A stretch of 64,000 nucleotides of DNA from Sphaerodactylus townsendi (lineage: Eukaryota). Positions 3,697-60,026 of this stretch are shown here, piece by piece (within the stretch, counting starts at the first letter, position 1; every line of letters starts with the position of its first letter). The notes beneath the pieces are model-generated. The model was not told the DNA's origin and did not search any database. It saw only the letters and a list, made by a program, of their open reading frames with translations. Location of the stretch: the NCBI RefSeq assembly GCF_021028975.2, contig NC_059429.1:24676001-24740000 (forward strand). The letters are read 5' to 3'. Both the position numbers and the translations under genes were made by a program.

Positions 3697-6138
3697 CTGT
3701 ATCTGCAGCTTCTATACTGGAAGGAAGGCTGGATGAAGGATTTTCTGGGAAAAGGTGGGATGCCGGAACCTCTGTTAGTTCTGATTTCACCTCTTGGTAG
3801 TCCAGACTCTCTATATCCCACTTAGACACTGTGGCAAGGGCAGGAGAGGGGTGAGGAGAGAAATAAACATATGACAAGTTGGAAGCAATAGCAATCATTA
3901 AAATTATACAAGAGTTCCAAGCACTTTGCATACATTTTCTCAGTAATCCTTAAAGCAACCCTGCAATGTGTGTCAGTGTTATTATTCCCACAGTACCTGT
4001 CTTCACTCCCCCTCCGCATATGAAAGCAGCCCAGAATGGGTTACTTCCCCCTCCTTCCTCAGTGTTGCATCCCTGATCTATACTTCTACCCAAGTTTTTT
4101 TTTCATACACATCATAATATGTTACATTTGGCTCCAACAAAGGCCCCTTCCACACACGCAAAATAATGCATTTTCAAACCACTTTCACAACTGTTTGCAA
4201 ATGGATTTTGCCATTCTGCACAGCTTCAAAGAGCATTGAAAGCAGTTTGAAGGTGCATTATTCTGCATGTGTAGAATGAGCCAAAGAAGCAAGAAGATGG
4301 AAAATAAGCCAGTAGTTTTCTGGACCCTGGTTCCAAAGCCAAAACTTAGCCAAGTCAGTGTGTTGTCCCCCCTAGGCAACCAACTCATTTTCTTAAAACG
4401 TAAAATATGGTTCTGTCTGAGAATCTATTGGTTTGCAGAAGCAATTTGTGCTAATGAGAAGAGGTGTTTCTAAGCTAGAAGGTTATTTTCCAGCTTTGCA
4501 ACTGGTGCAACCTAAAAGTGATGATGCTCTCGTTCTGCTACCCAGGAATCCCATTCCAAAAATATTCCCCGCACAGACATGAGATCGCAGTGCTGGTATT
4601 CCATCACCCCCTATTTCTGCTGATGGGGTGAGGAAATTAACAGCTTTTTAAAAAGGCCTTCCTGGAGCCAGTTGGTCTGTGTGAAGCAAACTTGGAATAC
4701 TTCTCTATGAAACATTGAGCCCCCTTCGAAAAGGCAACTGTGTGCATTCTGAAGGCCAGGGGGCGGGGAGGGGTGGGTAATGCTGCTTCATGGGGCCAGT
4801 CTTTGCAGAAAAGCACAATTATTTAGCAGAGACCACAGGCTGACTTTTCTCTTCCACTGGACTGCCTCTGTTCCATTCATGAGGGGGAATCTTCAGTGAC
4901 ATTTATAGTATCTGGCAGGCTGAATGAATTAATAGCAGAAAGGGAGGGAAGCGGAGAGAAAAAGGGGTAGATGCCTGGGATAGCATGGAAAAGTTTTCTC
5001 CAATCTGTTTGATTTTTCTACAGTTGGTAAATGTCATCTGCCCACCATGACGATTGATTGAATCCAGGACCAGCCCAGGAGGCTAAGCACCACAAAAGTG
5101 TAAGTGCAATTAAGAAATGAACTGAAAATACAACAAACAATTCATAACGCCATTAAGGAATTCAGAGAGGGGAACATGTGAAGGCTGCACAGTTTAGCGT
5201 TGTCCCATTTCAAAAAGCCTGTTCTGTAGCTATGAAAAAAGTTACAAAATGATTAAATTACAGGGGATTGAAACACCTTGGAAGAAGTGTGCTTGTTTTT
5301 TAAGATCTTTTCCAACTCATTGAGCTAGCACCTCTCTTCATAAGGAAGTTCTATCCATCTATTTCTAATTTAAAAAAAAAACTTCTTTAGAATCTTGCTT
5401 TTTGTTTACATAATCTTACACTCATGGGCCATAATCCTCTTGGCTGAGTTATGAAGGTATAGAATGCACTAACAGCTCCCAACCACAGAACCATTCTTGC
5501 CTCCAAACAGAATGCAGAACCCCTTCCAGGGTTTAGTCTAGATGATACCGGACACACAGCCTACCTTCTTGAGAACCTTGCAGGGAATCTCTGCTGGGTC
5601 CCTCTCTGGTCTCAGCACACTGCCTTGTTCTTAGCTGAGCCACTTCCTGGATGCTGTTCTCTAACCTCCTTACCAGCTCATTCTTCTCGTCCTCCAGTTG
5701 CCTTTTAGCCTCTTCTAAACCAGATTTGTCTTGGAGGAGGTTGCTGATTGTAGACTCCAGCTTGCTGACTTGGGTGTCCCTCTGGGCTTGTTCCCGCTTC
5801 AGGCTATCCACCTCTCTTCGAAGCAATCCCATCACAGAAAGAGAGGAGCCCCTGGCCACCTGGCTTCCATGCAGCTGGTCCACCCGATTCTCCAGAAGGC
5901 TGAGCCTTGCTCTGGCGGACTCCAGTTCCACTCGCTGGGCATTGCTCTCCCGCTGGAGAGCCTGGATGGCTGTCACTGTTTCATCCAGGCTAGGACAGCT
6001 GGCTTCATTTGCACTAGGGACTGAGAAGGAATAGATGCACCTGCCATCCTGGTTATTTGCCTTGTGGAGGTGGACGGTGCTGCCAAGTGCTTCCCACACC
6101 ACCCAGACTGAGAGCAAGCAAGTCAGCAGCGCTTCCAT
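3697..6138 (-). CDS. MYOC: Myocilin, partial: exon 1 CDS 6138-5565 and exon 2 3828-3697; exon 3 (olfactomedin domain) lies outside the window
   Basis: Exon 1 encodes a signal peptide (MEALLTCLLSVWVVWEALG), the motif ANNQDGRCIYSFSVPSANEASCP and a long coiled coil/leucine zipper. It ends GAA G|gtagg (574 nt, phase 1). Exon 2 (cag|..G|gtaga, 132 nt) encodes VSKWDIESLDYQEVKSELTEVPAS. The MYOC-VAMP4-METTL13 order matches known synteny. Confidence 0.95.
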
Positions 6139-9100
6139 GGCTTCAGCGCTACCTTTTGAAACCTGCTCAAAAGTAGAGGCTGGCCTCGGAAGCGCAGCAT
6201 GCAAGTGACACTCCTCACACAGCTCTCTGTGAAACTGAGCTCCCACAGAACTTGTTTTCATATGTCTGCGAGTTGAGGGAGGGGTTAGGAGGGGGTCGCT
6301 GTGCCAGCAACAGCAGCACAGAATAACAGGAATCTTTCTGACCTTTTAAAAGGGGATTATGTTTTGTCTGAAAAGATGAACAGCGGTGCCCATGTTCATT
6401 CCTGCAATCTTTTTCTTTTAACACATACCAAATACATAGAGCTATGTAGAGATAGCCACCTGGCTGCAGGATGATTTCCATGTATGCTAAAATGTGTGAA
6501 TAATTGTGCAATTTGGAACGTGAGTAAGTCAACGTGAGTAAGTCAACGTGAGTAATTCTGCCTAGGATCGCACTGTACATTGGAGGGTAGGGGTAGAATT
6601 CCGCTGGTCCGGCTTGCTTGCAGTTTCTTTGTCTAGAAATATATGTGTGATTCTGCATGCTGAATATGTAACCTCTGGAAGCTTCCAAAATATATATTAT
6701 TCTTACTCCAGAATAGCAGCAACATGGATCTATACAAAATCAGTGTACATGTATCTCAAAGCCACTTCCTTTATAATGTCAAAATTAATAAATGGAATAC
6801 CCTGTAATCTAATGGAAATTCAGTCAAGAAATAGCCAGGGGGAAATTCTAACCATTACTTACAAACAAAAAGATGCTGGCTAACACTGGAGTTCCAGTGT
6901 CCAAAATCTGGTTTCCAACCATGGCCAGGTACTTGTGTCAAGGACAGAATGCAAAGGTATCCTAAAAGTGTATTCTTAAATAACAGATTTCAATGGGTTT
7001 ATACTGGAGACTCTGCATAGGATTACACTGTTAAGTAAAGTTCCATTTATAGTTCCATCTTGTGCATTTGCCCGCCCTGTCTCCATTTCCCTTCCTCCCC
7101 CTCAGCACATAAATAACAGGAAGTGGAGAGAGACTAGCACTAGGCTTGAGATTTATTAACTGTCAGCCATTTTTGTTTGGTTTGAATTCATATATACCAT
7201 AGTTGTACTAGACAATTTATATTGTAGTTTTATTGTGACTCTTGGATATTGTATTAAATTTTAATTTACATTTGTAAGCTGCCCTGAGGAGACTTCAGCC
7301 TGGAATTGGGTGGGCTATAAGTATAACAACATAAATAAAGGTAAAAGTTGTCCCCCATGCAGGTACGGATCATTACTAACCATGTCACATCACAATGTTA
7401 ACTAGGCAGACTTTGTTAGACTCTGTTGATGTCACCTGTATCGAGAAACATTACATGACAGTGGTGATATTTTACCAGTTTAGATGCACAGAATACCACT
7501 CAGTTAACTGTGTTGTAATTGGTCCTTAGAAACATACAAAAAAGTGCCAACCAGCCTATTGGGGATTTGAGACTTGCTCAAATTCAGTTGAAAGAGGACT
7601 GTTTTTAACAGATTTTCTGCTTGGTCTCATGTAATTCCCACCATTATTGCAGTACTTGTCCGGAATGGCTTTTCTGAACTAAGATCCCATAATCCCCAGA
7701 ATAATCTTTTCTGTGGTCAAAAGGAATCCTCCTTGTTTTGTCCGTGGAAGATAGTATCCAGCCTATTACTACTGACCTACCTTACAGTGCTGAGGAAATA
7801 AATAAGTTATGGAACAAAATAAGTTATGTGAACCATACCCAACATACAGTTAACTTGTGGAACTCCCTGCTAAAGGATATAATGACCACCAGAGGGCTTT
7901 AAAAAGGGAATAGACAGATTACAGAAGAATAAACCCATTAGTGGTGGTTAGCAATGTTGGCTTAAATGTGACATCCATCTTAGTTAATGCCTGTTACTCC
8001 ACGGCACCACCAGGGAAGGCTTTAGAAATTCTGTGCCTTGCCTTGTTGGGGATTCTAAGCAGCCATTGTGGAAAACATGGTGCAGGATTAGATGAATTGT
8101 TAAATCAGACTCAGAATGGCTCTTCTTGGCCCCTTCCACACATGCAGAATAATGCACTTTCAATCCACTTTCACAGTTGTTTGCTAGTGGATTTTACTAT
8201 TTCGCACAGTAAAATTCAGCTGTAAAATACACTGAAAGTGGATTGAAAGTGGATTATTCTGCATGTGTGGAACGGGCCCTGGTGTTCTTACGCATTTCAA
8301 ACATTTGACAATGCTGATTGAATACTATATCACTCTAAGTATTGTTTCACTGTAGGTGAGGGGAAAGTGGACCAGGGAAATTAAGAGTTCAGTTTCCAGG
8401 ATAATCAGGACCCCAGGTCTGTATGTGTGCCTTGTAACTGAAATGACCACTGTAATAGCTAGAGGCTCACTTGTCCGGGTCCGTCCCCCTTGAGTGGCTT
8501 CTTCCAGTGACTGGGAGCTGATCTGGGACATGAAACACAAAGCCAGCAGGCTGCAGTGGTTAGTGTTGGACTAGGCTCTGAGAGACCCAGATTTGAATCT
8601 CCACTCTGCCACGGACGCTCAGTCACTCTCTCAAGCAAAACATACCTCGTAGGATGGTTGTTGTGAGGATCAAATGGAAGAGGGGAGAACAATGCTGTAA
8701 GGTCCCTGTTGGGGAGAACAGTGGGGAATAAATATCTAAATAAAGTATCTCTCTCTTCTAAGCATTTCTGTCTGCTGGGTATTTCACTGACAATCACAAT
8801 AGCTGAAGAGCAGGGAGGGTATGAATTTGCCTTGTAACCAAGGATGGTCAGGTTATCACCCTCTTTTATACTAAACAAGAATGTTCTGGTAGCTTCCCAA
8901 CCAAATGCATGTAATCATCTAGATAACACTCTCCATATGTAGTAGACGTGCATGACACTTCGAACAGGGGTTTTCAGAGAACTATCCACAGGAAATCCAA
9001 GTACTCATCAATCTATCGACAGACCAGCAAGGCCCCCCGGCCCGCATGAGCTGCTTCCAGAATTTGGTTGCCAAGAACAATGAAGCCGTGGGTGTTCACG

Positions 9101-11057
9101 TCTGCACCCCTCCCACACATTCTTGTGTGCCTGTCAGCCTTTGAACTGATGTCAGACTTTTTAACTGCCCATTTTTTTTATAACTGATGAAAATAAGTCT
9201 TCATAAATAAGAGTGTATGTAAAAATGACTGTCTATTTGTATAACTCTCTCTAGCTCCCCCAACCCACTCCCAAGAAGACAGGATGCTTTAGCTGCATCC
9301 ATATCAGTTCTTAACCCAGACAACATTTACTAAAGGGAAGTGAGGGGCAAGGCTAGGGGGGGAATTAAAGCCCAGTAGTAAAATTCATGCCTATTGAATG
9401 CTGCCAGTCCCAGGATAGGTAGCTTATTTCACCTATGAGGCGGCCCAGTTTAAAGGAAACATCATGGAAGGGAAAATGCAAGTGGTTGATTTTGTCCAAC
9501 TCAGCCGGCACCATGATTAATCAAGCTTCACATTGAGAGGTAAAAACTGGTAGAGTAGGAAGTGCTGACAATGGCAATGATCAAGATAGCAGAGCACTTT
9601 TATACTGAAAAAGGGTTTGAGGCTTTACAGAAAGGAAACGATGACCAAGAGCCGTTTATACTAGGTAATCGGTATTGCAAGCCGACTGATGGTCTTAAAA
9701 GGGAATCAAATAAATGCACAGAAGATGCCAAACTAGTTAAATTAGTTCAGATCATTAACAAGGGCACACACAACAGTGCTTAACAGAAAGTCCCTCAGCA
9801 ACTCTAATGTCCATCCCCCCCATCTGAATAGTGGGGGGGGGGGAAGTAGCACCATTTAGCCACTGGCTAACACAGGTGGCCGCCTCTGAAGTTTCCTCAA
9901 CTTGTCAAGATGAATGAAACTGAGCAATGCTGCTCTTAGCTGATCAAAGAGACATCTACTATGTTTTGGAGAAATAGTAACATTTTACTGTAGCGGTGAA
10001 GAACTGGCAGGACTTGCGCATGGATGCAGAGACGGAAGGAAGACTCTGAAATCACCACCCACGTACACACACCCCGGATAGAAAGACATCCAGCTGCTCA
10101 AAGATAGAACATTCTCTCCAGCAGAAACCAAAATACTTCCACATGTGAAAAGAGAAGGAAATGCTGAAAGAGAGACACGGGGTGGCAAAAGGCCAGGGAT
10201 GAAAAAATTGATGAAATCACCACCAGCCTTGAGGTAGCAGTAGGTAGCAAGGGCCAATATAAGACACAACATATAGAGACGGCCAACAGCAGAATGTTGA
10301 GGATCCAGGCCGTCAAGGAGCAAGAGAGACCCAAAGGAATCAGAGAAATTAGGAGAGTTAGAAGCTGAGAGAAATGTGGAAACAAATCAGGACAGACTGG
10401 GTGTTTGAAGGCATCCAAAACAAAAGACAGCAAAGTATGATGTACATGGAAAAGTTTGAGATAGCTGGGGAAAGTTTTCTAGAAATTCTGACAAGAACCA
10501 TTCCCCGAGAGATGTTTTTGAAAACGAGACGAAAAACCTGAAGTACACCCTTGTTTGAGGAGAAATGAAGGTGAGACTGAATGGCAGGCTGGAAGAAGAG
10601 TTAGGGCAGTGGTTTACTTTTAAGGGAGGGGGTATACTGCAGCATGCTTGAGAGATTAAATGGGGGAGGGAGGCAAATTGGTCTAAGTTTTTCAGCCTCA
10701 CATGTTTTGTCAACAAAAACAAATATGTTGTTCTTATTCTAGTTCAAAGTTATGAGGGAAAAGGAAAAATTGCAGAATGTAGTATTATGTCAGGACAGAC
10801 AGCGTTGCATAGTGGTTAAGAGCGGCAGGCTCAAACCTGGAGAATTGGATTCAATTCCTTATTTATCCATATAAAGTCTTCTGGGTGACCTTGGACCAGT
10901 CACAGTTCTCTAGGAACTCTCTCAGCCCCCAAGGAGGCAGACAATGGCAAACCATCTCCAAACCTCTCTTGCCTTGAAAACACTTTGAGGTCACCATACA
11001 TCAGATGTGACTTAACAGCATTTTCCCCCACCACATATTTCTAAATGGGAGGGAAGG

Positions 11058-11220
11058 CAGCATGGTATTAGATCTTGGAAGCGAAGCAGGGTCAGTATTT
11101 GGAAGGGATAACACCACGGAAGACTCTGCAGAGGAAGGCAATGGCAAACCACCTTACTTGCCTTGAAAGCCTCTTGCTGGGGTTCCCACTAGTTAACTGT
11201 GACATGACGGCATACACACA
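11058..11220 (+). mobile_element. 5S rRNA-derived SINE fragment with RTE/Sauria-like tail
   Basis: gatcttggaagcgaagcagggtc..agtatttggaaggga matches the 5S internal promoter region and is followed by gaggaaggcaatggcaaaccacc. Confidence 0.55.
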
Positions 11221-11908
11221 AAGAGTGTATTACTTCAAATAGTAGCAAGCTGACTGTTACCACACAGCCTTGGTAAGATTAAGGTATTATCCTGGTATCG
11301 TGTTTCCACCAACTCCAGCACGGTCCAGCAGTCATCTTGGTTCCACAAAATAAATATCGAAGACTTGCATAAACTCCCCAGTTGCTGGTGTAAGTGGATC
11401 TTTAGAGTTATACAAAGTTCTTCAGGTTCCAATTTCTGCCCTCTATAGTACAAACGACGCAATGTCCAGATAGTAGATATTTTCCATTGCTGCTCCATTA
11501 AACTCTCCCCTTCCAGAAAAGGCCACCGAAATATGAAGACCAATGTTAAGATACTCAGAACTGCCACTGCTTTTGCTAGCCAGAGCAAAAACAGATAGTA
11601 AGGTTTAAGTACTTTTGATGCTTCAATCTAATTTTTGGCTTACACCAACATGCAACTTTCTGGCTTTCTCCCTTCCACAGGAGCCTGAAATATCTCCCCA
11701 GATCCACCATATCCAGGAACAAGATGTTGGAGGGGGGAGAGAGCATTGTTCTTTATGAGAACAAACCCCTCCAACCCTCAGGGATTTAAATCTAAGGGAT
11801 TTAATATATGAACTTTAGGTATATTTTAACATATTGCTTTTTTTTAAAAAACCCACAAGAAACCAACACGCTGGCACTGTTTATGAGAAGCTTCAGAAGA
11901 CTCCTGTA

Positions 11909-12085
11909 GTTGGGAGTGTTATGGGGTTTCTCGGCTGTATGGCTGTGTTCCAGGAGCATTTTCTCCTGACGTTTCGCCTGCATCTGTGGCCGGCATCTTC
12001 AGAGGAGAAAATGCTACTGGAACACAGCCATACAGCCCGGAAACCCCACAACACCCCGGTGATTCTGGCCATGAAAGCCTTCGAC
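11909..12085. mobile_element. Penelope-like element terminal fragment arranged as an inverted repeat; hammerhead core on the minus strand
   Basis: Arms ~11915-11967 and 12003-12057 are inverted. Tail gtgattctggccatgaaagccttcgac. TSD actcctgta at 11900-11908 and 12086-12094. Confidence 0.8.
11964..12006 (-). ncRNA. Minimal type I hammerhead ribozyme motif
   Basis: The minus strand reads tcct-CTGAAGA-t-gccggccacagatgcaggc-GAAA-c-GTC-agga. The core is conserved, stem II is GCC/GGC, stem III is the palindromic ACGU, and stem I is tcct/agga, extended by the inverted repeat. Confidence 0.75.
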
Positions 12086-13287
12086 ACTCCTGTAATTCAC
12101 CCCAAGCCCTATCCCCCAAAAGATGGGAAATCAGTAGCAGCAAGCAGAACACGGAGTCCAAGGGGCATTAAGCAAGGCATCAGTGAGACTCATCAGATGT
12201 GGGTTTCGCAGCTGAGAAGTGGACCCCTTTCTACTGAATAAGAAATTCAGACTAATGACAGTGCAGTTAGTACAGTGATATGTGATTTTCTGACAATAAT
12301 TCCATCTCAGTGGGTTCCTCTGTCACTTAAGAGTTAAAGGTGTGTGTGTGGGGGGGAGGAGAGGTTAATTCTGGAAACGATGAAGACCATGAAACTAGTA
12401 GACTGAGCTGTTATTTTTAACAATGGGAGCCTTGTATACTCCACACGCCATATGTCCAGTGTAAACGTGTGCAGCCGGTGCACGTGCATTTAAAATCCAG
12501 CAGTGCATTGACTTTTTGCCTCTTCATGATCTGGCAGCAAAAAACTCCAATACCATTCCGGCTTCGCTGGCACAGGCCAAAAGCTGCCACTTCGTCAGCT
12601 AACAGCTGGCACATCTTGGACTGTCATCATTCAAACAAGAACTGCTCCAATCATGGATCAGGAATAATACACTTACAGTCAAAAATAGGTTTTTACTGGA
12701 ATGCTTTTCAGGTCACATTCATAAGCAGTAATACCAAGAACATGGATCTTTTGTACCCCGTATAAGTACAGAAAATCTGCTTGCAAAATCAAGTTGGTTT
12801 TAAAACATACATGTGAGAAAAATGTGACATCCTGGCAGTCATTCCACTGAACAGTTAGGTTTTCTTAGAACAGTGATACTGATATTATATTCTTCATCCC
12901 ACCCCCGACTTTTCCACCACTGAACTCTGCCAGCAGTGATAGGACATTGTTTTAAATTATAAATAACATCATTAGCAGGTAGCAATATATACAATGTAAA
13001 AAAAAGAGAGAGAAATACACCAGCAAATGTCTGGTTCCAAACAGGGTTTCCTTCAACAGGCGGATGGTGAGGTTTTAGATTCAAAGTTGACACGAACATG
13101 AACTTTTGGCTGGAAAAAAAGAGGTTGATTTGTCAGGTCCTCCGAATACCCTCCTCAGAGAGTGTCACCTGCCTTCAAGGAAAGAAACATTTCAAAGCTA
13201 TATACATGTTACGTTCCACTGAAAGCACGCAGCGGCTTGCTTGGCTGTCATTCCAAAGCCACGTCCACAGCAAACTCCATCAGCAAG

Positions 13288-16200
13288 TCAAGTGTGGTAT
13301 TTTAGGATGATGGGAACTGCACAAGACAGAGAAGGAAGCATCCTGAAATATACATGAGGTGTAAACTGACCAACTTCATCCTCTGTTATCAAGACTTCTC
13401 CTCCATCACTGCAGCATCCTCTCCAAGGTCAATTCAGAGCACGTTCTGAAGCATATCTGGGGTGCTGTGTGGTTTCCGGGCTGTATGGCCGTGTTCTAGC
13501 AGCATTCTAGCTAGAACACGGCCATACAGCCCGGAAACCACACAGCACCCCAGTGATTCCGGCCGTGAAAGCCTTCGACAATACATTGAACTTAAGCATA
13601 TCGTTTGTGCCCATGATTAAGCAGTAGAACAGCATATCCTATAGCTATTCTGGACCTTTTGAGGTTTGGCACACCTGAGCATTCTCTGAAATGCTTCTAC
13701 AGCCAAAACATTATCAGTGCAATTTTATGCAGAGCTATATTCTGCGTAAGTCTACTGAAGGCTACATTGTCCCTCTCACCAATGGAGCTGGCTACTGGTA
13801 TACCAACGAAGGGGAGATCTTCTCACATGATCGACCTACATCCCACAACACCCCCACCCGTGGCCAGTCTCTTGGGCTACCTAAAGTGAAGCTACAGAGA
13901 ACTTCTGAAAAATTACACGGTCTATTTACTGCACCTGACAGAATATCCAGCAGTCACATCTGAGCTGAGGGCTCATTCCACCCTGACACAGTAAACAGAC
14001 CTAGTTACGATCTCCAAAATAGATTTGCATTCTTAATAGAGAACTGAGAGAAAAGATCACAGATGAAGCTCATGAATACTTGAATTCTGGGAGATATTCA
14101 TTCTCTCCTCAGCAGTATTCACTGACATTCCTTTCTTACACACCTCCACTTTGGCCCTCATTTAGCCTTTCCATCTGCCATGTATAATATATAAATATAT
14201 ATCAGAGCGCTAAATAGAATGGAAGTTGACACCAAGTAAGAAACACCTCAAGTCAAAAGTCTCGGACACAGCTGAAATCTATTTCTAGATGTGTCCCTTC
14301 CCTGCATTTTAACACAAACCAGTCATGAACCAACAGAAGCCAAATTCTGTTCCAGATACCACTAAATTCTTCAACCTATATAAATTATGCAAATTAAGGT
14401 TGAAACTCACTATTGAGGAAGTACAACTCACTGGGCTCCACTTGAAGAAATCTACATAGGATTATTATGTAAGAAGAGCTGCAAATCTGGCCAGTTTTGC
14501 ATAGTTTGGCTACAGCTGGTCACAGAAGATGACAAGTGGAAGATCACAGTGACCCTGAAACTAGAAAATTTCTAAAAAATGGTCAGCCCATGTATGCATG
14601 AATTTAAAAGGATCTCCGAACCCAAAACCCACAGTCCTCTAAGAATACAAGGATACGGTGGGCTAAAGGGCATTCTTTGGCAAACTCTAAACTAGCAAAC
14701 CTGCAAAAGATGGTGGAAGGCACATGATGCAGTCTTTATTGAACATTAAGTAAGGTCTGGGTGGGAGATCTCTTGGTAAGCTGCCTGTTCTTGCATTGAG
14801 TAGTGGGCAGGGTGGGGTTAACTAGATTGCCTCTGATGTTCCCCCTGACTCTAGGGACTCCCAATTGCCCAGTGGTACAGCAACCAGTGGTGCCAAAGAG
14901 CAAAAGTGAAAAGACTATGCAGGTTTCTTGAAGGTAGCAAAATCAAGGGTATCAACTTGAGCAGCATGAAGCTATTTGAGATCTGGGCTCTTCAAAGAAG
15001 CTACCCAACTCCGCAGAGAGCATAGCACCTTCAGTGTGATTTACTCACCAATAATCACTAGGAGAACTGCAACAGCAACCAGTGCCACAATGGCCTTCAT
15101 CTGCAGAAAGAAGCACAAAGAAATAATAGGGAAGTCATTCCTAAAATGGTCTTAGAATTCACTGAGCTGAAGAATCGTTATAACAGCTCTGTAAGGAAAG
15201 CCAATGTTACTTCCCCTGTTACTGCAGACAGGCAATGAAATTTGAAATGATAACCTCCTAGGTAATTCTGTCTAGGCCGAAAAAGATGGCACATGCAACA
15301 CAACCAGCTTGCGCACACACATGACATCAGCAAACTAATGTACCAAAGCACACCAGACTCAACTTGCCTCATCAGCACAGCACAGGGGAAGGAAGGGCTT
15401 CAGCCTTCCCTCCTGTGCAGTTTACCAGTGTGGAAAGGACCATGTGGCTGCATGTGTCATCAACGCATAATGTAAAGCTCCATAGCAGAGCAAACCAGTC
15501 CCTTCCCTGAGCCAATGCTGCTTGGGAAAATAGCATAGGAAGGAATCCTAATGCCCTCCCTCCCCCCAATTAGACCCTGGCCCACCTGGGAAGCGTAGTT
15601 TACCAATGCCCTGTGTGTCTACAAATCAGATCAGGGCAGTGACCTGACTTGCATCACAAGTACCATCTATTTGAGTCCTTAATCACATTTCAAGACAAGT
15701 AGTCAGGCTACCATGTCCCAAATACAAGTAGAGATACAGTTGGAAAAATGGAAACTAACTCCCACTTCACGATTATAATGGTAAAAGCTAGCAGAACTGA
15801 CCGAATAACACCAAACAGCATGATAATGTGAAGTTACAAAATAAGAGAACATGGGTGTGCAGTACAATTGGATAAGTTCAGATCTTCAGTCAACTATGAT
15901 GCTTCAAAGATGTACCATCTAGGAAGGTGATGGAGCTTGTCTTTAAGACAGTGACCAAATGAGCAAGGAAAACAGACTGCTCAGATTCAACCACATTGCA
16001 AAGAGCTGAACCTGGTCTCCAGGGGGAAAAATTCAGCCCATTTTAACTGCAATGCATGCAGAGGGGCACAGCAGCGTAACTTCTGAATGAGCAATAATAT
16101 GCTCCAAGTTCACTTGTGATAACATTGCCATAAATGACAGAGAAGGAATTCCCCTTTTGGTGTCTCACCTTGCAGCCACGCCACCACATCTGTCTTCGGA

Positions 16201-19200
16201 GCTGTTTAGATCGGTTGCTGAAAGCTGTCGCGTTGTCTGATAAGCTCTCTGCATTAGAAAAAGTGCAAACCAAAGAGAGACAGACAGTTAACATTCTGCA
16301 AATCCAGAAGCTTTCTGCAACTCTGTTCTGAATTTTAAAAAACAAACAAAAGTGAATCATAACATTTAGTTGCAGAACTGTGGTGAATTTCAGATGATCT
16401 TGTTCTCTAAGCAGGAACACAGCCAGATGCTATGGTTACATAAATGATCAACAGGTGCCACCTCAAGACTGTCCTAGAGCAATTCAACTTCTAGTGCACT
16501 GCTACATCAGTGTAACTTTGGTACTGGCATAGAGTGGAAAGGGGGCCAGAACTGGATGGCACCAGGGGAATGTTGGAGATGAGCAGAACTTAGTTTTGAA
16601 ACTTTGATCTTCATGCTTCTTTTCCCTACATCTCCCTCTGTTTTATGAAACTAAGAACTGATGGGACACTTATGACAAATCACTGTCAACCTCTCACAAC
16701 AGTAGGCAGATTGGGTCCAATGCTACTAGAATACAAATGGAAGTGAAGTAGGAAGTAGCGGGTCTCAAAAGGTGTGCTAAGATCCACCTTCACATGTTAC
16801 ACATGTTTTATACCACTCTAGTAGTGGTAGGAATTAGATGTGGCAGTAGCCCCTACCGCAGGTCCAAATCCATCTGATTCGTCACCTCTTGGCAAACAGC
16901 TACATGATGTAGCCTGTTTAAAACCACATATTAGAAATAAAGAGGTACCATCAGAGTGGGTGTGTACTCTAAAAGGCAAGCCAAGATTCAGTGTTTGAAA
17001 TACAATTGAACAGATCATGTAAAAAAGTGATCCATTTTCTTATTTTGTGCAATCCATACCTTACCTAGGAAGCTTTTGACAAGGATACATTGCACCATCA
17101 GAGCTGGGGGGGAAATTAGAATTCCTGCACTCTAGTAGGAAATTTTAAGATCATCAAGTTAAAGCAATATCCCAATGCATATGTTGAGGGGGGGGGGAGG
17201 GAGGATGGCAGCCATGCACGGAGAAGAGAGCTGCGAGCACTATACTAAATACTCATGGGTTGTGAATACTCAAGCATCTTTCAGAAAGAGAGGAGGAGGC
17301 CAAGAAGCTAAAATCCCTACCTGACTTATCCTGCAAGTCGTCCAGCCGCTCTCCCCTTTCTATCACCTTGGTGATGTTTTCTTGCATGACATCAATGACT
17401 TCATCAACTTGGTTCTGAACACTGGATGAAACAAAAACCATCATAAGTTTCCTGTCCCAAAAACGAATCATCAATGGTAGCAAACACTACAAGCAATTAA
17501 TACCTGTTCAAAGCATTTCAGAAGCAGGGCGGGTCACAGCAGTTCTGCAGTGCAATGGCATTCAACCCAAGTGTTCTTCAATTGAGACCACAGAACCACA
17601 TCTTATGGGTTGCAAGCCCTGTAAAGCCCCCATTTTTGATATTTATCAGAAGGCCTTGCTTCTAGTGCACATGTGTAGAGAGCAAGGGTGTTATGCCTCC
17701 TCCCTCTCTTTGGATGCATGCCAAGAAGAGTGGCAGGACAGCACAATGAAGTCATTCTGTGGAGGAAAGGATTCATCCATGTCTCCAATCCTTGGCTCGT
17801 TCTTTACTATTTTACAGCTGTCGGTGCCCATTTTGTGTTTGTGTGTTTCCTGTCCCTGGATTTCTTGGTCTGCTGGTCACAACCTTGAAGCTAATGAGGT
17901 CCCCCTGGCCCTGTGAGGTGACAATTCTATCTTGCTCATTGCTCTCTTCCTGTCATGTGACTCTGATGTCTTTCTGGATAGGCTCAGTGGATCTCATGTC
18001 CAAAGGGTCTTGAAAGGTTGAAGACCTGGTTTTGATGAGACATTCCCATGATCTGCACACTAATAATACATGCAACTGGCAAACCCACCACTAGAATCTC
18101 TCAACACACATCCAACTCCAAGGAATAATCATTCTTTTGGGATGTTTGCAGACAGGGGAATGGCATTCTCCTGGTTTGATGTTGTAATACAAGAAAAGCT
18201 CCAAATATTACAGGTGATTTCTTTAACTTTAAATTGGGCCAGGAATTCCCATCGCAAAGTCACTGTGGAACTCGACTGCTAAGAGTGGACTTGAATATAT
18301 AGCTGTTGCTCGGCACATACTGCACTCGCATTACAAAAACAGTGCAATCCTATGCACAGCTACTCCAGCCTAAGCTCAGGTCCAAAGACGAGACTCAAAA
18401 CGGAGAAAATTATGCACACGATTGCATTGCAAGCCTACAAAATTTAGTCATCCACAGAGATGTACCAACAGGCCAAAAAACAGCCTGGCCAGCATAATGG
18501 TTTCTCCCTAGTTGCTTTTACTGAAAGCTTCTTAAGGCAGCCCCTGCACTGGCCAACAACTGAGCAAAGGAGAGTGCTATTCAGCAAGTACATATTCCAC
18601 ATGCCAAAAGTTACACACTGTGTTTGCATTTACATAGCAACAATCAATGTTATTCTTTTCAAAGGAGAATCTCTCACTCTTTCCATATCACACCTTTTTT
18701 TTTACAATGATCAGAGAGAATGCAAATTATACTTTTCTTACACAATCTTTCCCTAGGTTCAGGCTCCATATAATAATCAGTTCTCTTTCTTCCCATTAGA
18801 ATTTGCTCTTCTTCAATATTTGGCACAGAGGAGAACTTGAGAATGTGACACAGAAATGGCCATGGAAACACAAGGGAAGAAAATGGGGTTCCTTAGGACA
18901 GGTATTTTACCTTCTGATCTCTGGAAGTAGCTGGTCAGTCCCGCTCCGAGATTCTGACCATTTTAAAAAGATGCTTTCATATCCAGGGTTTTCACCGTAA
19001 TAAGGACAATTAGAAATATTAAATTTAAAAGGGCAAAACCCAACATCCCCAAGGTTAACATGTTCAGTTGGGAGGGGAAATGCCAAGGCCTTTGGTAAAA
19101 ATTGTATCCTGCTCTTCTAAGCTCAGGGCTGTCTTTGTTACCTGCCTTGGGCCTCGAGGATGGGAATCTATAGTAGGGGGCTATAATAATCATAACCTAT

Positions 19201-32297: not shown

Positions 32298-32512
32298 AGC
32301 CGTGTAAGGTTTCCGGGTTGTATGGCCTTAAAGAAAGATTCTTTCGAATGTTTCGCCAGAGCCTGTGGCTGGCATCTTCAGATGATCCTCTGAAGATGCC
32401 AGCCACAGATGCAGGCGAAACGTCAGGAGAGAATGCTGCTAGAACACGGCCATACAGCCCGGAAACCACACAGCACCCAAGTGATTCCGGCCGTGAAAGC
32501 CTTCTACAATAC
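32298..32512. mobile_element. Penelope-like inverted terminal fragment: degenerate left arm, intact right arm
   Basis: The right arm is nearly identical to 58660-58790. The left arm is a divergent reverse complement of it. Confidence 0.8.
32386..32428 (+). ncRNA. Minimal type I hammerhead ribozyme motif
   Basis: tcct-CTGAAGA(32390-32396)-t-gccagccacagatgcaggc-GAAA(32417-32420)-cGTC-agga. Confidence 0.75.
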
Positions 32513-33405: not shown

Positions 33406-36400
33406 CTAACTGTGACCAGGCGTAGGCTCTTTGTGCTGCTGAATGAAATAAGCTGAAAGTTCATTCAGGGCTTTGTAACGGTGAGAGATGGAGTTCTTCA
33501 CAGACTTGGGTAGCTCAGCGTACCTGAGAAAAGCCAGAAAAGAGAACACCAACTGAAGCTCGAAGCAGCTGAAAGCTCAATTAGCTCAGTTACAATGTTA
33601 AATATGATAAATGATTTTACATGGCACAACGCAGCCTAAACCTATGTCTCCAAGGGAATTCGGTTATGAATCCTGTATTTCCCACCAGAAATTTCAGAAC
33701 AGAACACGTGGCATCTCTGTGCTGCCAACAATGCAATCTTTAATCCAGTTATAGCCTTTTAAACCCAATGAATTAAGTGGGCTTAACAGGGTACAATTCT
33801 GCTTAGGATTGCTTTGCGAGTGTTACCGTTATCGCAGACTCCTCCCAACTGCCATTCAGTTAAGGCAACAGGATCTTCATTACAAAATAAGCATATTTAC
33901 AAGGCAGACCTTGTGAAAGTATGGGGTAAAGCCCCTATAGCAGAGTAGCACAATATACTGGAACACAGTAGGAAGTCCTGCTGCAGCAAAGGCCCAATAT
34001 ACAGCACAATATACTGGAACACAGTAGGAAGACGCACAGAGCAGCTCAGCTTCACAGAAGCGGCCCTACTTTTATTTTTTCATAAGAGTAGCTCTAATAG
34101 ACAAAGTGTCTTCGCCAGGCAGTGCTAAGACAAACGTATGTCTGGCTTACACAATCACAATCCATTGCCAATTAATCCCAGAATGAGGCTGCCAGGTGTT
34201 ACCTGTCAGTTAGATTTTGATGATCAGACACATGTGACATCAGTGCTCGGACAGACACGGCATTCCCCTACAACATAAGCATTTTATTGTCATTGTGCCC
34301 ACACAACGAAATTTACAGCAGCATTCCTCGATGCACACAATTCCAGACTCATACCCCATCCTTCCTTTCCCCTTCTTCCACCCATCCCTACACAGCCCCA
34401 AATACATCAACACGAAGCCATGGAGTTCATCATAGCCACAGCTCTAGTGCAGAAGCTGTCTCGAAGCCTCTTTGTCCTAGTTTTTATAGACCTGTATCAT
34501 CTGCCAGATGGTAACAGTTCAAAAAGAGAGTGTGCTGAATGAGCGAATTCCTTGCAAGCAACTGTCATGGTTTAAAACTGCAAAACTAACAAGCAGTCAC
34601 TTACGTCTGGTTATATCCTTCTGGCTGGAAGCATGGATCCCATCCGAAGTCTCTGGGTCCTCTTGGATCAACTATCTGTCCCTGTAAATGGATGCACGAA
34701 GGGAAAGATCTTAAGAGCCAGGCTATGGTTTACAGTCATCACTTCCAAGAGGGATGTAAGCTAGTCTTGGATTGTTGAGAATTCTGAAGCCTCCACCAAC
34801 TCCCAGAAACCCTCTGAGAAAAAAGGCAGATACTGGGCAAATTTGTAAGGAGGCAGGAAACACTGGTCCCTGATCCATTCACTTGAAATTGCTGATCTTC
34901 TCACTTTAATATGCAACTTATCCTTGAAATCAGGCTCCATCCCTGAAGACTGGAAGATGGCCAATGTCACACCAATCTTTAAGAAAGGATCTAGGGGGGA
35001 CCCGGGAAATTACAGGCCAGTCAGTTTGACATCTGTTCCTGGTAAATTAGTAGAATCTGTCATTAAAGATAAAATTATAAAACATGTAGAAAAGCAAGAC
35101 CTGCTGAGAAAGAGTCAGCATGGCTTTTGCAGAGGCAAATCCTGTCTTACAAACTTACTAGAGTTCTTTGAGGATGTAAACAGGCATGTGGATAAGGGGG
35201 AACCAGTGGACATTGTCTACTTGGATTTCCAAAAGGCTTTTGACAAAGTTCCTCACCAGAGACTATTGAGAAAACTCAGCAATGAAGGAATAAGAGGGGA
35301 AGTCCTCCTATGGATTAAAAACTGGTTGAGAAACAGGAAGCAAAGAGTGGGTGTAAATGGGAAATTCTCACAATGGAGAGATGTAGGGAGTGGTGTCCCC
35401 CAAGGATCCGTATTGGGACCAGTGCTCTTTAACCTATTCATAAATGACCTGGAAGTAGGGGTGGGTAGCGTGGTGGCCAAGTTTGCAGATGATACCAAAT
35501 TATGTAGGGTGGTGAGAACCACAAAGGATTGCGAGGAGCTCAAAGCGGACCTTGATAAATTAGGTGAGTGGGCTAAGAAATGGCAAATGCAGTTCAATGT
35601 AGCAAAATGCAAAGTGATGCACATAGGGGCAAAAAATCCAAACTTCACATACATGCTACAGGGGTCAGTGCTATCAGTCACAGACCAGGAAAGGGATTTG
35701 GGCGTCTTAGTTGATAGTTCCATGGGAATGTCAACTCAATGTATGGCAGCTGTGAAAAAGGCAAACTCTATGCTGGGGATAATTAGGAAAGGAATTGAGA
35801 ATAAAACTGCAAAGATTGTCATGCCCTTATATAAAGCTGTGGTGCGACCGCACTTGGAGTACTGTGTTCAGTTCTGGTCGCCACATCTCAAAAAGGATAT
35901 TGAAGAGATAGAAAAAGTGCAGAGAAGGGCGACGAGGATGATTGAGGGGCTGGAGCACCTTCCTTATGAGGAAAGGCTGCAGCGTTTGGGACTCTTTAGT
36001 TTGGAGAGGAGACGTCTGAGGGGGGATATGATTGAAGTCTATAAAATTATGCATGGGGTAGAAAATGTTGACAGAGAGAAATTTTTCTCTCTTTCTCACA
36101 ATACTAGAACCAGGGGGCATTCATTGAAAATGCTGGGGGGAAGAATTAGAACTAATAAAAGGAAACACTTCTTCACGCAACGTGTGATTGGTGTTTGGAA
36201 TATGCTGCCACAGGAGGTGGTGATGGCCACTAACCTGGATAGCTTTAAAAGGGGCTTGGACAGATTTATGGAGGAGAAGTCGATTTATGGCTACCAATCT
36301 TGATCCTCTTTGATCTGAGATTGCAAATGCCTTAACAGTCCAGGTGCTCGGGAGCAACAGCCACAGAAGGCCATTGCTTTCACATCCTACATGTGAACTC

Positions 36401-42331: not shown

Positions 42332-45300
42332 ATGGAAGAGCTGCGGTTGCTGCCGAGACGAGCGCAGGACTTCAGTTCGGCCGGCTATTGGGAGCGCTTC
42401 TTCCGCGAGCGAGGCGCGCACGCTTTCGAGTGGTATGGCGAGTGGGAGGAGCTTCGCGAGCCGTTGGGGAGGTACCTGCGCGTGCGGGATTCGGTGAGAC
42501 ACGTTACGTGGGACAGAGTGGCGCCGGCGGGTACAACGCGCGCTGTAGGAAACAGTGAAATCGTTGAGAAATAGACCTGGCTCTTGCTGGTTACTGTGTT
42601 TTGATCAAAAGTAAACCTCATGTTCATCGGGGTTATTCTCAAGTAAAGTGGTGGAGGACTTTAAATAAAGTCTTCTGGTTGTAGGGGTAAAAATTAATTA
42701 ATTAATAATAAATAAAATAAGTAATAATAAATTAAATAATCAGGAGTCTAGTGGAATCTGTGAAGGTTTATGGTAGACTACAGATTGTTATCTAAGTCAC
42801 CACATAGAAGAGTTTGGTTTTATATCCCTCCTTTCTCTCCTGCAGGAGACTCAAAGGGGCTTACAATTTCCTTGCCCTTTCCCCCTCACAACAAACACCC
42901 TGTGAGGCGGGCGGGGCTGAGAGAGCTCCGAGAAGCTGTGACTACCCCAAGGTTGCCCAGCTGGCGTGTGTGGGAGTGTACAGGCTAATCTGAATTCCCC
43001 AGATAAGCCTCCACAGCTCAGGCGGCAGAGCTGGGAATCAAACCTGGTTCCTCCAGATTAGATACACGAGCTCTTAACCTCCTACGCCACTGCCATTTCT
43101 GTTTGTTGAGGTTTTGTGTATTGTCCAGGGTGTTTACAGCCAGAATCAACTGGCTGTTGTGGGATTTCCAGTCAGTGTGGGCGTGGTCTGGTAGTTTTTG
43201 CTCTTAATGTGTTGCTTGCATCTGTGACTGAGATCTTTAGAGGTATATCATGGTGCTATGACATGCTTCTGAAGGTGCCAGCCGTAGAGGCAGGGGAATT
43301 GTTAGTAACGAAAACTACCAGGCCACGTCCACGCAGCCTGGAAAACACACAATAGCCAGTTTTGTTAATTCCTTTCTGTGTTTCTGCTTGCACTGCTGCG
43401 GTGGAAGGGACTGTAGTGCTTCTGGCTACAGAATGAGGTTCCCCCACTTGTTCATTAATTCTCTACTTTTCTCCACAATGTGGACCCAAAGCACAGCATT
43501 GTTCTACCCTACTTTTTATTTTCATAACAGTTCTGTGAGATTGGTTAGGATGAGTGAGAAAGAAGTGTGCGTGACTCAGGGTCATCCAGAGAAAGGGGAG
43601 CCAGCCACAAGTGGGACCTGGAATTACAGCTCATTGGCAGACTACAGAGGTTAGTTTCCCTGGAGAAAATGGTTGCTTTGGAGGGCGGACTTTATGACAT
43701 TGTATCCCACTGAGGTCCTGTCCTTCCTGGGCTCTATCCCCAATTCTCCAGGAGTTTCACAGCCTGGCTCTGGCAGTCCAACCCCTGCCAATTCCCTGCC
43801 AGTGGCCACTGGGGACCTGGCAACCCTACTGAGAGATTTTCCATGGCAGAGAGAGGATTTGCATCTGAGTCTCCCAGAAGGGCCCTTTTAGGCCCTTTAC
43901 ACCTGGGCCGCTTGTCAACTACTGGGACTCGCTGCTCCTCCCTCTAGGGGAGAGGACTTTGAAAACTGAGTTGCTGGATGCCACTTATATTTATACTTGC
44001 ATTTAATATACTTAGTTTTATTGATTTTATCACTACTTTTAAAGGTTTTTAGTTGTTTTATTATTGTATTGCGTTTATATGTTGTACACCGCCTGGAGCC
44101 CCCTGGGGACAGGGCGGTATAAAAGTGTAAGGTATAAATAAAAATAAATAAATAAGGCAGACTGACACTATAACCCAGGGATTCCCTACCTGCAGACGCA
44201 ATTGAAATTCCAAAACAGCGTGGTAGGTGCAGCAACAAAACGGCTTCCATAGGAGGTGCAGCCAGTCACAAATGTATTCCCACAGCTTAATTTTAGTAAC
44301 AAAGTGAGATGTTCATATTCTTTGGGAACTGCTTAACCATAAGAACCGTTTTAACACAGCGATATGAGTTTTCTTTGATACCATTGCTCATGCTCCAGTA
44401 TCTCTTTGACCAGGTGCTGTAATGCTTCCCTTGCACTGTTCATGTTAAACATCTTGCTTGCTTACAGTCCATATGATTCAGTATCCTTCCTTTCCCCCCA
44501 CTAGATCCTTGTTGTTGGGTGTGGCAACTCAGAACTGAGTGAGCAGCTCTACGACGAGGGGTACCAGAATATCACCAATGTAGACATTAGCGAAATGGTC
44601 ATCAAGCAGATGGGAGAACGCAGTGTCCACCTACGGCCCAAGATGAGCTACCTGGTCATGAATGTGCTGCAGATGGATTTCCCTGACGGGCGCTTCCAGG
44701 TAGTGCTAGACAAGGGCACTCTGGATGCCCTCCTGACTGATGGAGAAGGGCCCACAGTGGCCAGGGCAGAGCAAATGTTTGCTGAAATTGCTCGTGTCCT
44801 CCAGTTTGGTGGGCGTTATCTGTGTGTTTCTTTAGCCCAAGCACACGTATTGAAGGCAGCCTTGGAATATTTCTCCAAGGAAGGCTGGATGATTCGAATA
44901 CACCAAGCCTCTGAGAAGGAAGCTGCTGCTTCTGAGGGTGAATTTGCCCTGCCTGTGTTTGTCTACGTTATGACAAAGATGAAGCAAGTTCCCAACTCAG
45001 CTTCTCTCATCTTGGAACTGTGTGTGGAAAAACATGACAAGCCCATCCGGTTTTCAGCTTTGGAGCATCTGATTGAGGCAGTAAAAGAGAGGCAGCAGTA
45101 TGCCCTGCTTCGCAGCCAGCTCAACAAGAGTCCTAGCATGGGGAATGTCTCCCTGGATCTCTGCAACAAGGAGACTGGCCAAGTTCGCTACACCTTCCAC
45201 GTGGTGCACTGCCTGACTGTGAAAGTGTCTCGGGACAACCAGTTTGCTATCTTCATCAGTGAGTTTATTTTCTCCTTGTTGGCAGCTTGGCAGTACAGGT

Positions 45301-58082: not shown

Positions 58083-58649
58083 TTACTGCGACGTCGCAGG
58101 AAGCGGCCGAAGGGAGCGTCTTACGGTTTGACAGAGTGCCTGGAGCGCAGCAGTCAGATTAATGCTGCTTAAACTGGAACTTTGGGGCTTCCTGGAGGCG
58201 GGATCTCCTTATCTTCGCTAATAATTTGGCGGGAACAATTTTTTGCCAGTTAATTAGGAAGAACGAGGCCGGACATATCCCAACACTCAATGGGAACTCC
58301 ACTCTGCAGTAACTTCCAACAACTCCAAGCTACTCTGGGCTATCCTAAACAATTTTAATCAAAGCAAGCCTCCTACCCCTATCTGTATTACCCCTGATAC
58401 TTGGCATAACTATTTTATCAAACTTTTTAATTATGATATTTTAAGTAACAGATCTCCTTCACCTATCCCTTTAGATTTGCCTAGCTGGCCTCCTGTCTCA
58501 ACTCAAGAAGTAGTTGAGCTGTTAGAGGACCTCAAACGAAGGAAACCCCCTGGACCTGATTTTATACTCCCAGAGATTCTAAAATTTAATACTGATTAGT
58601 GGGCCTCTATCCTGGCAACTTTTTTACCCGAGTAAACAACTCAGGTATG

Positions 58650-58792
58650 GGTGCTGTGTGATCCTCTGAAGATGCCAGCCACAGATGCAGGCGAAACGTC
58701 AGGAGAGAATGCTGCTAGAACACAGCCATACAGCCCGGAAACCACACAGCACCCAAGTGATTCCGGCCGTGAAAGCCTTCGACAATACATCA
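58650..58792 (+). mobile_element. Penelope-like terminal fragment with hammerhead core, nested in the degraded LINE
   Basis: 12-bp TSD aactcaggtatg at 58638-58649 and 58793-58804. Short inverted 5' piece gggtgctgtgtg. Confidence 0.85.
58662..58704 (+). ncRNA. Minimal type I hammerhead ribozyme motif
   Basis: tcct-CTGAAGA(58666-58672)-t-gccagccacagatgcaggc-GAAA(58693-58696)-cGTC-agga, identical to 32386-32428. Confidence 0.75.
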
Positions 58793-60026
58793 AACTCAGG
58801 TATGCTCCCCAAGTCTTGGCTGTCTTCAACTGTTTCCCATTCATAAAAAGGGAAGTCATTTAGAGCCTGCCAATTTCCGCCCCATCAGCCTTATCTCAGT
58901 AATAGGGAAGATTTATGCTAAATTGTTACTGAAGAAACTTCAGTCATGGCTCTCCCATTCCGGTGCAGTGGGGGCTGAACAAATAGGCTTTTGTAAAGGG
59001 AAATCCCCTCTGGACCATTCCTTGGTGCTATTACACCTAGCCAGTAAACACTCAATTTATGCACATAACAAACTCTACTCTGCCTTTATTGATTTAAAGG
59101 CTGCTTTTGACTCTTTGCCGAGAGCCCTACTCTGGGCAAAACTGGCTGTCCTCACCATTGATGCCAGACTCCTTTTCTTGATTAGGCAACTGCGCACAAA
59201 TACCAGTTGCCGGATCAAGTGCTCCCATGAAGGCCTTTTGACAGACATATTTCCAGAGGGCTGCGTCCTGGCCCCCGCTCACTCACCTCTGCCTCTTCTC
59301 CATTTGGTCCACATTCTATTTGAAGTAAGGGCCCGAGACCTGCATGCAGTACTCCAGATGTGGTCTGACCAATGCGGTGTACAGTTGTAGTATGACATCT
59401 ACAATCTGGGAAACATGCAGTTTTACCATCTTTGTGGCCTGAGAAATGTCGCTGTTTGTTTTCTTGTCCTTGACAGAAGCCCAAGTGTCTGTACTTAGTT
59501 CACCTTGCTGGGCCTAGTACTACAGGCTCATTTTGAAATCTGCTTCATTGTGTTTCCCTGAGGACTCATAGAAAAAGATAGTGAACTTCATTTTTAGGAG
59601 TTTGAAGAAGGGACTTTCTGCTATTGGACTCTGCTACTTGACATTTTTTTATTTCATTTTTAAAAATTAATAATATTTCATTTTTTAAAATTAATAAAAA
59701 TTAATAACCCATTCCCTGACTGGAGTTGGGCTCAGGGTGGCTTACAAATTAAAATATTAGATAGTACAATAAAACTTTGCAATAAAACCAGTAACAATGC
59801 TAAAACCTAAACTTAAGAATCCACAGATGGCGAGCATCAAAGGAAACACTAGAATATAAGGGAATTTCCATGATGTCCTCTGTTAAAACTGAATTAATGA
59901 ATGATATTGATTGATTCTGGACTAAACATTTAGTGTGGAAGAAATTATTGTCTCTTAAATGAAAGTTTGGTGGCTACCATAGTTTATAAATCAGTGTGGT
60001 ATGTAAAACAGTGAACACATTTTAAA

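Follow-up and report, generated by a model that had tools for sequence, protein, structure and literature searches.

The VAMP4 locus and a hammerhead-bearing insert

We investigated a 64-kb window of the Sphaerodactylus townsendi genome (the whole stretch that was analysed, contig NC_059429.1, positions 24,676,001 to 24,740,000, containing no N), in which VAMP4 lies on the minus strand and a short insert with a hammerhead ribozyme motif follows downstream of its stop codon. The identity of VAMP4 was checked exon by exon, each exon being searched singly. The SNARE-motif exons within 17256-17486 and 16046-16429 match the Pfam family Synaptobrevin, and for the exon within 17256-17486 the best solved relative is the VAMP4 chain 2nps_A (6e-15), far ahead of VAMP2. 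The hammerhead core starts 1,286 nt downstream of the VAMP4 stop, and an ATTAAA at 11805-11800 is the sole AATAAA or ATTAAA on the minus strand from this stop to position 10500 (motif scan). An earlier interpretation made from the letters of the window (the sequence-only reading) had placed the motif about 1.3 kb past the stop and upstream of this hexamer, and both placements hold. In our analysis it is highly probable that the insert is a dead-on-arrival, head-to-head double stub of a Poseidon-type Penelope-like element (PLE), most likely representing inert neutral DNA beyond the ends of the VAMP4 transcripts.

The insert (11912-12084) comprises 173 bp and is flanked by a 12-nt target-site duplication (TSD) with one mismatch between its two copies (Table 1). 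It consists of two stubs from the start of a PLE open reading frame (ORF), arranged head-to-head with a tail of ~30 nt at one end only. Positions in the element are counted from the A of the ATG in CTGAAG-ATG-CC, and the natural copy at 58650-58792 served as the yardstick for a family search with blastn against the window. Stub A reaches in full from -9 to about +84 on the minus strand, including the core, and its downstream part is the 3' strand of a long stem I. Stub B is 89% identical to the natural copy over 84 nt (blastn), and its reverse complement is the 5' strand of the same stem in the minus-strand RNA. The junction between both stubs coincides with the native 4-bp stem I of the hammerhead: the inverted stub ends in TCCT (complementary to AGGA), and the same four bases natively stand ahead of the core; the junction is therefore a 4-nt microhomology which doubles as the native stem I. 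This bears out the view of the sequence-only reading that a TSD-flanked insert has its inversion breakpoint at stem I.

Sequence and fold of the hammerhead core

The core occupies 35 nt of the minus strand from 12002 to 11968, with exactly the letters that had been quoted before, and starts with C3 of CUGAAGA and ends with C17 of GUC. The catalytic boxes C3-U4-G5-A6-N7-G8-A9 and G12-A13-A14 are complete, and position 17, where a hammerhead has H17 (not G), is a C. A single unpaired U separates A9 from G10.1, and the pair G10.1-C11.1 closes helix II, which is formed by GCC..GGC with an inner GC/GC (3 bp plus 2 bp around a mismatch). Positions 15.1 to 16.1 read A15.1, C15.2, G16.2 and U16.1, a palindromic ACGU with zero loop, so that a single molecule cannot build stem III by itself. 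The ATG that starts the PLE ORF lies inside the core and is made up of A9, the bulged U and G10.1. From the position of C17 the scissile bond is predicted between 11968 and 11967, which agrees with the site given by the sequence-only reading. The window contains three occurrences of the core pattern, compared to 0.00 expected by chance.

A repeat search found inverted arms of 55 nt (11913-11967 and 12003-12057) around the core which are 91% complementary and separated by exactly the 35 nt of the core; the stem I of about 50 bp claimed before is thus present. Of the five differences between the arms, three are true mismatches in the minus-strand RNA and two are G-U wobbles; the core is directly adjoined by 13 perfect pairs, and the longest uninterrupted pairing extends over 21 bp. 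In the sister copies within the window helix I has its native 4 bp (TCCT/AGGA). The minus strand of 11900-12094 (195 nt) folds at -113.9 kcal/mol with z = -12.7 compared to shuffled sequences. In the predicted fold stems I and II are formed and both strands of the core are unpaired; in this minimum-energy fold the bulged U is paired with G12, one pair away from the active form.

The search with Rfam hammerhead models that had been proposed as a check did not recover the motif. None of the families Hammerhead_1, _3, _II, HH9 and HH10 matches in 10000-14000 even at E up to 10, and a scan of the whole window at the gathering score yields no hammerhead family. A permissive scan of 10000-14000 lists only sub-threshold look-alikes of microRNA precursors, because of the hairpin shape alone. 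The miss is to be expected since the motif has no helix III, and Cervera and de la Pena required a special descriptor to find such minimal hammerhead ribozyme (min-HHR) motifs (PMC4209133). As far as can be judged from its letters and pairing, the motif is a minimal type-I, dimer-type hammerhead of a PLE.

Assignment to Poseidon-type Penelope-like elements

The min-HHR of metazoan PLEs possess the catalytic boxes, an unpaired base between A9 and G10.1, the G10.1-C11.1 pair, a palindromic 15.2-16.2 without a proper helix III and a helix I of 4-5 bp, and they mostly occur as single truncated motifs or as opposite-strand pairs (PMC4209133). The core at 11968-12002 shows every one of the features listed there, including the loopless ACGU and the native 4-bp helix I. 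The statement of the sequence-only reading that this is a minimal type I hammerhead of a PLE, a kind which usually needs dimerisation, is in agreement with this list. Two differences from the motifs in PLE pseudo-LTRs (long terminal repeats) arise: helix II has 3 bp plus 2 bp around a mismatch here, compared to 7-8 bp in the Schistosoma families, and the inversion has turned helix I into a closed, long hairpin.

The closest architectural match is PAc, a Poseidon element of Anolis carolinensis described in Mob DNA in 2024 (PMC11167929). Its hammerhead carries C3 and G8 just upstream of the start codon, the ORF begins at stem II, and the cut site lies 26 nt past the start codon. Its reverse transcriptase (RT) initiates internally, 111-118 nt into the ORF, and a second start site defines an optional tail of 30-40 bp; in vitro the PAc protein cleaves and extends both target strands (PMC11167929). 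The copies in our window agree with every numeric feature given for PAc. They read CTGAAG-ATG-CC with the ATG opening stem II, have 26 nt from the ATG to GTC (counted), end at +113 to +121 where the tail is present, and carry an optional tail of ~30 nt. The cutting and extension of both target strands by PAc would explain the head-to-head stubs. A difference from PAc is that the insert is a double stub without RT or endonuclease, and that its stem I has 55 bp because the inverted stub abuts the core.

The general layout of PLEs, as given by Craig et al. 2021 (PMC8557442), combines extensive 5' truncation with a second, likewise 5'-truncated copy in inverted orientation next to the first, and with a tail that is often one-sided. 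The insert shows the TSD, the strong 5' truncation and the adjacent inverted 5'-truncated copy, and the truncation, the inverted copy forming inverted repeats and the one-sided tail recur in three out of four loci of the window. It departs from the standard layout in that both copies are cut to stubs of ~90 nt, which leaves little beyond the hammerhead and its neighbourhood.

Several observations weigh against this assignment and against the view that the insert lies outside the VAMP4 transcripts. There is no full-length PLE (RT plus GIY-YIG) within the window, the long ORFs being of the LINE (long interspersed nuclear element) type with AP endonuclease and RVT_1. A phmmer search with the 39-aa peptide of the stub against 1.84 billion representatives yielded nine weak matches, which are short or chimeric gene models, none of them with RT or GIY-YIG. 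The link to Poseidon rests on architecture as compared with the description of PAc in PMC11167929, not on an alignment of the sequences. Regarding transcription, which is treated below, the RNA evidence consists of only two unstranded libraries from unspecified tissue at modest depth. The ATTAAA downstream of the insert is the only signal of canonical type past the VAMP4 stop, and a rare or tissue-specific long isoform of VAMP4 using it would be compatible with the data.

The 39-aa stub peptide contains no Pfam domain. The public gene models P0001, P0002 and P0004 start with or contain this peptide (MPATDAGETSGEN...); P0002 is a tandem-repeat protein of 378 aa, and P0004 is a caspase-domain protein of 333 aa whose first 40 residues come from the stub. 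These three models are probably annotation artefacts or exonised stubs which use the start codon of the PLE embedded in the hammerhead.

Sister copies within the window

The family of PLE stubs is represented by four insert loci in the window (Table 1). All of them contain an inverted part, and the position of the junction differs each time. The core copies at 32390-32424 and 58666-58700, both on the plus strand, differ from the core at 11968-12002 by one base, located in the mismatch of stem II. At 32340-32512 a degenerate inverted stub (minus strand, -11 to about +73) lies directly upstream and the junction is ~8 nt 5' of the core. The copy at 58650-58792, which has the TSD AACTCAGGTATG, starts at its 5' end with 11 nt in inverted orientation and is situated within a remnant of a LINE reverse transcriptase. 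The stem-I junction of our insert need not have been selected, because the sister copies show several junction positions and a 4-nt microhomology is present here. The "50-bp stem I" represents one of the various positions at which the junction falls, and not a closure by design.

The outer ends in the window loci fall between +113 and +121 where a tail is present, and at about +73, +84 and +87 where it is absent. In each of the three head-to-head inserts (11912-12084, 13457-13586 and 32340-32512) one outer end carries a tail of ~30 nt (+113 to +119), and the other ends 30-40 nt earlier (+73 to +87), in or beside an AC-rich run. One-sided tails agree with PMC8557442; they would also be in keeping with each target strand having primed from a different one of the two RT start sites described in PMC11167929, where one must keep in mind that n is only three.

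The insert at 13457-13586 has the TSD AAGCATATC and lies ~110-140 nt upstream of the acceptor of the last VAMP4 exon. Because its arms are perfect, this copy is suggested to be much younger than the insert at 11912-12084, or to have been formed by snap-back synthesis. The LINE-type ORFs of the window are found at 58400-59390, 60058-63066 and 34924-36303; the one at 60058-63066 has 1002 aa with AP-endonuclease and RVT_1 domains, and further RT remnants are present. Upstream of VAMP4 a methyltransferase-domain ORF (44595-45356, plus strand; Pfam) was found, and ~6.5 kb past the 3' end of VAMP4 a coiled-coil ORF (5533-6261, minus strand; Pfam). These two flanking ORFs would fit the gene order of the human locus, METTL13-VAMP4-MYOC.

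Table 1. Features around the insert, sister inserts of the same family, and RNA depth along the 3' side of VAMP4 (positions in the window; RNA values are depth per column).
Feature	Position	Strand	Description
VAMP4 stop codon TGA	13288..13290	-	protein ends ...PIILKYHT
TSD, upstream copy in VAMP4 sense	12085..12096		minus strand reads AATTACAGGAGT; 11/12 vs 11911-11900
Insert	11912..12084		minus stub -9 to about +84; plus stub +30 to +113; intact core
Stub B	12003..12084	+	PLE ORF start, +30 (first base past cut site) to ~+113, with ~30-nt tail
Minimal hammerhead core	11968..12002	-	C3-A9 (CUGAAGA), bulged U, stem II, GAAA, loopless ACGU, C17
Stub A, downstream part	11912..11967	-	PLE ORF +30 to ~+84, ends in AC-rich run, no tail
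TSD, downstream copy	11900..11911		minus strand reads AACTACAGGAGT
ATTAAA hexamer downstream of insert	11800..11805	-	motif scan; sampled RNA shows no use (zero depth 11708-11909)
Sister insert in last VAMP4 intron	13457..13586		minus stub +35..+87, plus stub +43..+119, head-to-head, 44-nt perfect arms, no core
Sister insert	32340..32512 (left edge approximate)		plus stub -12 to +117, intact core 32390-32424
Sister insert	58650..58792	+	single stub -21 to +121, intact core 58666-58700, no minus stub
RNA depth, proximal 3'UTR	13021-13222		7-21
RNA depth	12819-12919		3-6
RNA depth	12718-12818		1-2
RNA depth	down to about 12415		traces
RNA depth	12314-12414		essentially zero
RNA depth	12112-12313		zero in all four columns
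RNA depth, insert	11910-12010		150-240
RNA depth	11203-11909		zero in all four columns

Transcript coverage

Two unstranded RNA-seq runs that share a species label, sampled at 6% and 19% of their reads, were mapped on 10900-13900 together with two DNA contig sets. In the two libraries the coverage of the VAMP4 3' untranslated region (3'UTR), about 10-20 per column, fades by ~12800 and is gone by ~12415, and RNA depth is zero in the unique sequence to either side of the insert. The insert itself is covered by reads of which 87-92% continue into sequence unlike the window, and their flanking consensus differs from the 11912-12084 locus; these reads therefore derive from other copies of the family. 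Judged from the proximal depth, a read-through isoform of VAMP4 present at 5% would give ~8 reads over the 300 nt that directly precede the insert, and none was seen. A rough Poisson bound from the depths places a long VAMP4 isoform containing the insert at about 2% or less of the VAMP4 transcripts in the sampled libraries. In the available RNA the insert lies in the untranscribed spacer between VAMP4 and the next gene.

The sequence-only reading had presumed the insert inside the VAMP4 3'UTR, where it could act as a self-cleaving element or as an element of double-stranded RNA that shortens or destabilises long VAMP4 isoforms. This presumption is not supported by the zero depth in both unique flanks. 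RNA over 11800-12100 consists of reads from other copies on the insert, and polyadenylation upstream of 12100 with no read-through, which that reading had itself named as the outcome speaking against it, is what the data display. A pile-up of read ends at or near 11968/11967 was seen in neither RNA run, though several hundred family reads per run cover the site. The structural side of the reading, i.e. the minimal hammerhead of a PLE and the stem I lengthened by inversion in a TSD-flanked insert, stands, and the functional inference is not supported by the depth around the insert. We found no sign that the insert regulates VAMP4.

The 3'UTR of VAMP4 as seen in RNA-seq has a length of ~0.45-0.9 kb and contains neither AATAAA nor ATTAAA; the variant hexamers nearest to the observed ends are AATATA (12891-12886) and AGTAAA (12697-12692). 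In this 3'UTR the RNA individuals show four fixed differences to the reference (12828, 13004, 13036 and 13157) and a length polymorphism of AAA at 12997. In run X6, 1,871 reads exit the family tail at 13583 into one consistent flank with 96% agreement. Because these reads share one flank, one transcript from another place in the genome, expressed at a very high level, carries a copy of the stub.

A different possibility is that a minor or tissue-specific long 3'UTR of VAMP4 ends past the ATTAAA at 11805-11800, and that the imperfect 55-bp hairpin serves as a generic element of double-stranded RNA (of the ADAR, Staufen or Dicer type) which lowers the stability of the transcript or changes its localisation. 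The lone ATTAAA past the stop would provide such an isoform with its signal, only weak variant hexamers accompany the observed ends near 12800 and 12415, and the hairpin is very stable; according to a preprint on Xenopus, the few retrozyme copies that overlap exons tend toward 3'UTRs. We nevertheless consider this possibility unlikely. Neither run has any depth in 12112-12313 or 11203-11909, compared to a total of ~20-35 in the proximal 3'UTR, the isoform is confined by the bound of roughly 2% given above, and the longest perfect duplex comprises only 21 bp. Editing of the RNA in the arms was ruled out as well: A/G variants occur at similar frequency in the DNA contigs, so that the A/G differences represent variation within the family.

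Potential for cleavage

Single min-HHR motifs showed no detectable cleavage in vitro and dimers cleaved poorly (PMC4209133). Cleavage of min-HHR as dimers was shown by Lunse et al. 2016, as cited in a review (PMC6765202). The hammerhead of PAc does not cleave without the PAc protein, the minimum active RNA in the in vitro insertion assay requires the first 172 nt of the ORF, and the authors suggest that this downstream RNA holds the protein-binding motif; in Anolis, RNA-seq showed no ends at the cut site of PAc (PMC11167929). The hammerhead strand of our insert carries only +1 to about +84 of the PLE ORF. There is no second core on the minus strand within the window; the two further cores lie at distances of 20 and 47 kb on the plus strand. 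From the general chemistry of hammerheads it may be expected that a stem I of 55 bp would hold the products paired and favour religation. Real self-cleavage of the hammerhead in the insert appears very unlikely on these grounds.

The proposal that the hammerhead cleaves itself in VAMP4 transcripts at 11968/11967, either as a monomer or as a dimer with family RNAs, and thereby shortens or destabilises long isoforms, can draw on a core in which all positions for hammerhead catalysis are intact and on a minimum-energy fold that keeps this core open, with stems I and II on its two sides. Abundant family RNAs (a total depth of ~300-430 over the core) are available as dimer partners in trans. It is confronted with transcript coverage that does not reach the element, with the lack of an end pile-up at the cut site even across the whole family, and with the missing intramolecular stem III and same-strand second motif in the window. 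The relatives either lack monomer activity and have low dimer activity (PMC4209133) or require the PLE protein (PMC11167929), and the long stem I would favour religation. Taken together we assign it scarcely any probability.

The model behind this proposal is found in rodents. A discontinuous hammerhead reportedly resides in the 3'UTRs of rodent Clec2 genes, a description attributed to Martick et al. in 2008. The Clec2 ribozyme is complete, active as a monomer, located within mature mRNAs and conserved among species. Our motif resembles it in lying downstream of a stop codon in sense orientation, and differs in having no stem III, in being a copy of a transposon family, and in being located outside the transcript in the sampled RNA.

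A combination of both ideas is that in another tissue (e.g. brain) a long VAMP4 isoform ending past the ATTAAA at 11805-11800 does hold the insert, and that its hammerhead with the long stem I is cut there with the PLE protein or with family RNAs in trans. We give this a very slight chance. If it were true, a transposon-derived, dimer-dependent ribozyme would regulate a long isoform of a SNARE gene.

Abundance, age and distribution of the stub family

The summed depth of contig words over the core is ~5x10^4 times the single-copy depth, a figure which is not a copy number; it shows that the family of PLE stubs is extremely numerous. The insert at 11912-12084 is not recent, as the differences between its arms (5 out of 55 positions) and between the TSD copies (1 out of 12) demonstrate. 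Contigs of organism A hold the insert, with records 4 and 6 extending 53 and 27 nt into it. For organism B (~2% diverged) 61% of the sampled 31-letter words are present; its contigs end at 11901 and 12084, i.e. at the edges of the insert, and no bridging or empty-site contig is among the 15 out of 206 joints listed.

The density of cores in the window is 3 in 64 kb. At this density the chance that a given stop codon has a sense-strand core within 1.5 kb is a few percent (about 3-4% of genes), and hundreds of genes should therefore have a sense core nearby.

The abundance of such short units also raises the question of a non-autonomous derivative of the retrozyme type, which would spread as a small circular RNA instead of being a truncated product of an autonomous PLE. 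In its favour are the small size of the unit (about 130-140 nt), its extreme abundance and its strong presence in RNA, and a 2026 preprint derives animal retrozymes from the terminal regions of PLEs. Retrozymes are, however, defined by hammerheads in head-to-tail tandem, and none of the four window loci (0/4) has this arrangement, all being single or head-to-head. The unit moreover coincides with the ORF start and the RT start sites of an autonomous PLE (PAc, PMC11167929), and for this reason plain 5' truncation explains its length. We regard a retrozyme origin as most improbable.

Origin of the insert and implications

The preferred explanation is a Poseidon-type PLE insertion which would have been dead on arrival, consisting of two heavily 5'-truncated cDNA stubs joined head-to-head. 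The PLE endonuclease may have nicked both target strands and the RT may have extended from each of them, as the in vitro work on the Anolis element leads us to infer. Each stub starts at an outer end that matches an RT start site of the PLE within the first ~120 nt of the ORF, one at ~+113 with the tail and one at ~+84 without it. The two stubs meet at the hammerhead of the element itself, in the microhomology TCCT/AGGA that is its native stem I, and the inverted stub extends this 4-bp stem into an imperfect duplex of 55 bp around the intact 35-nt core. Catalytic inertness of the product is probable: the motif requires a second copy for stem III with no same-strand partner available in the window, and it lacks the downstream RNA required by PAc in vitro. 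Both properties, together with its position beyond the ends of the VAMP4 transcripts, are the reason to consider the insert most likely as inert neutral spacer DNA.

The insert is of an already known kind, as the hammerhead, the insertion ends, the tail and the inverted layout of a reptile PLE have all been described before. Being one more copy of a very abundant reptile PLE, it matters little by itself. Its value is modest and lies in illustrating in vivo the model of PLE insertion that was developed in vitro, as both target strands apparently primed reverse transcription from internal start sites. For annotation it advises caution in two respects: intact-looking ribozyme cores near genes are to be expected by chance in the S. 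townsendi genome, and the ATG of the stub is taken as a start codon by gene predictors.

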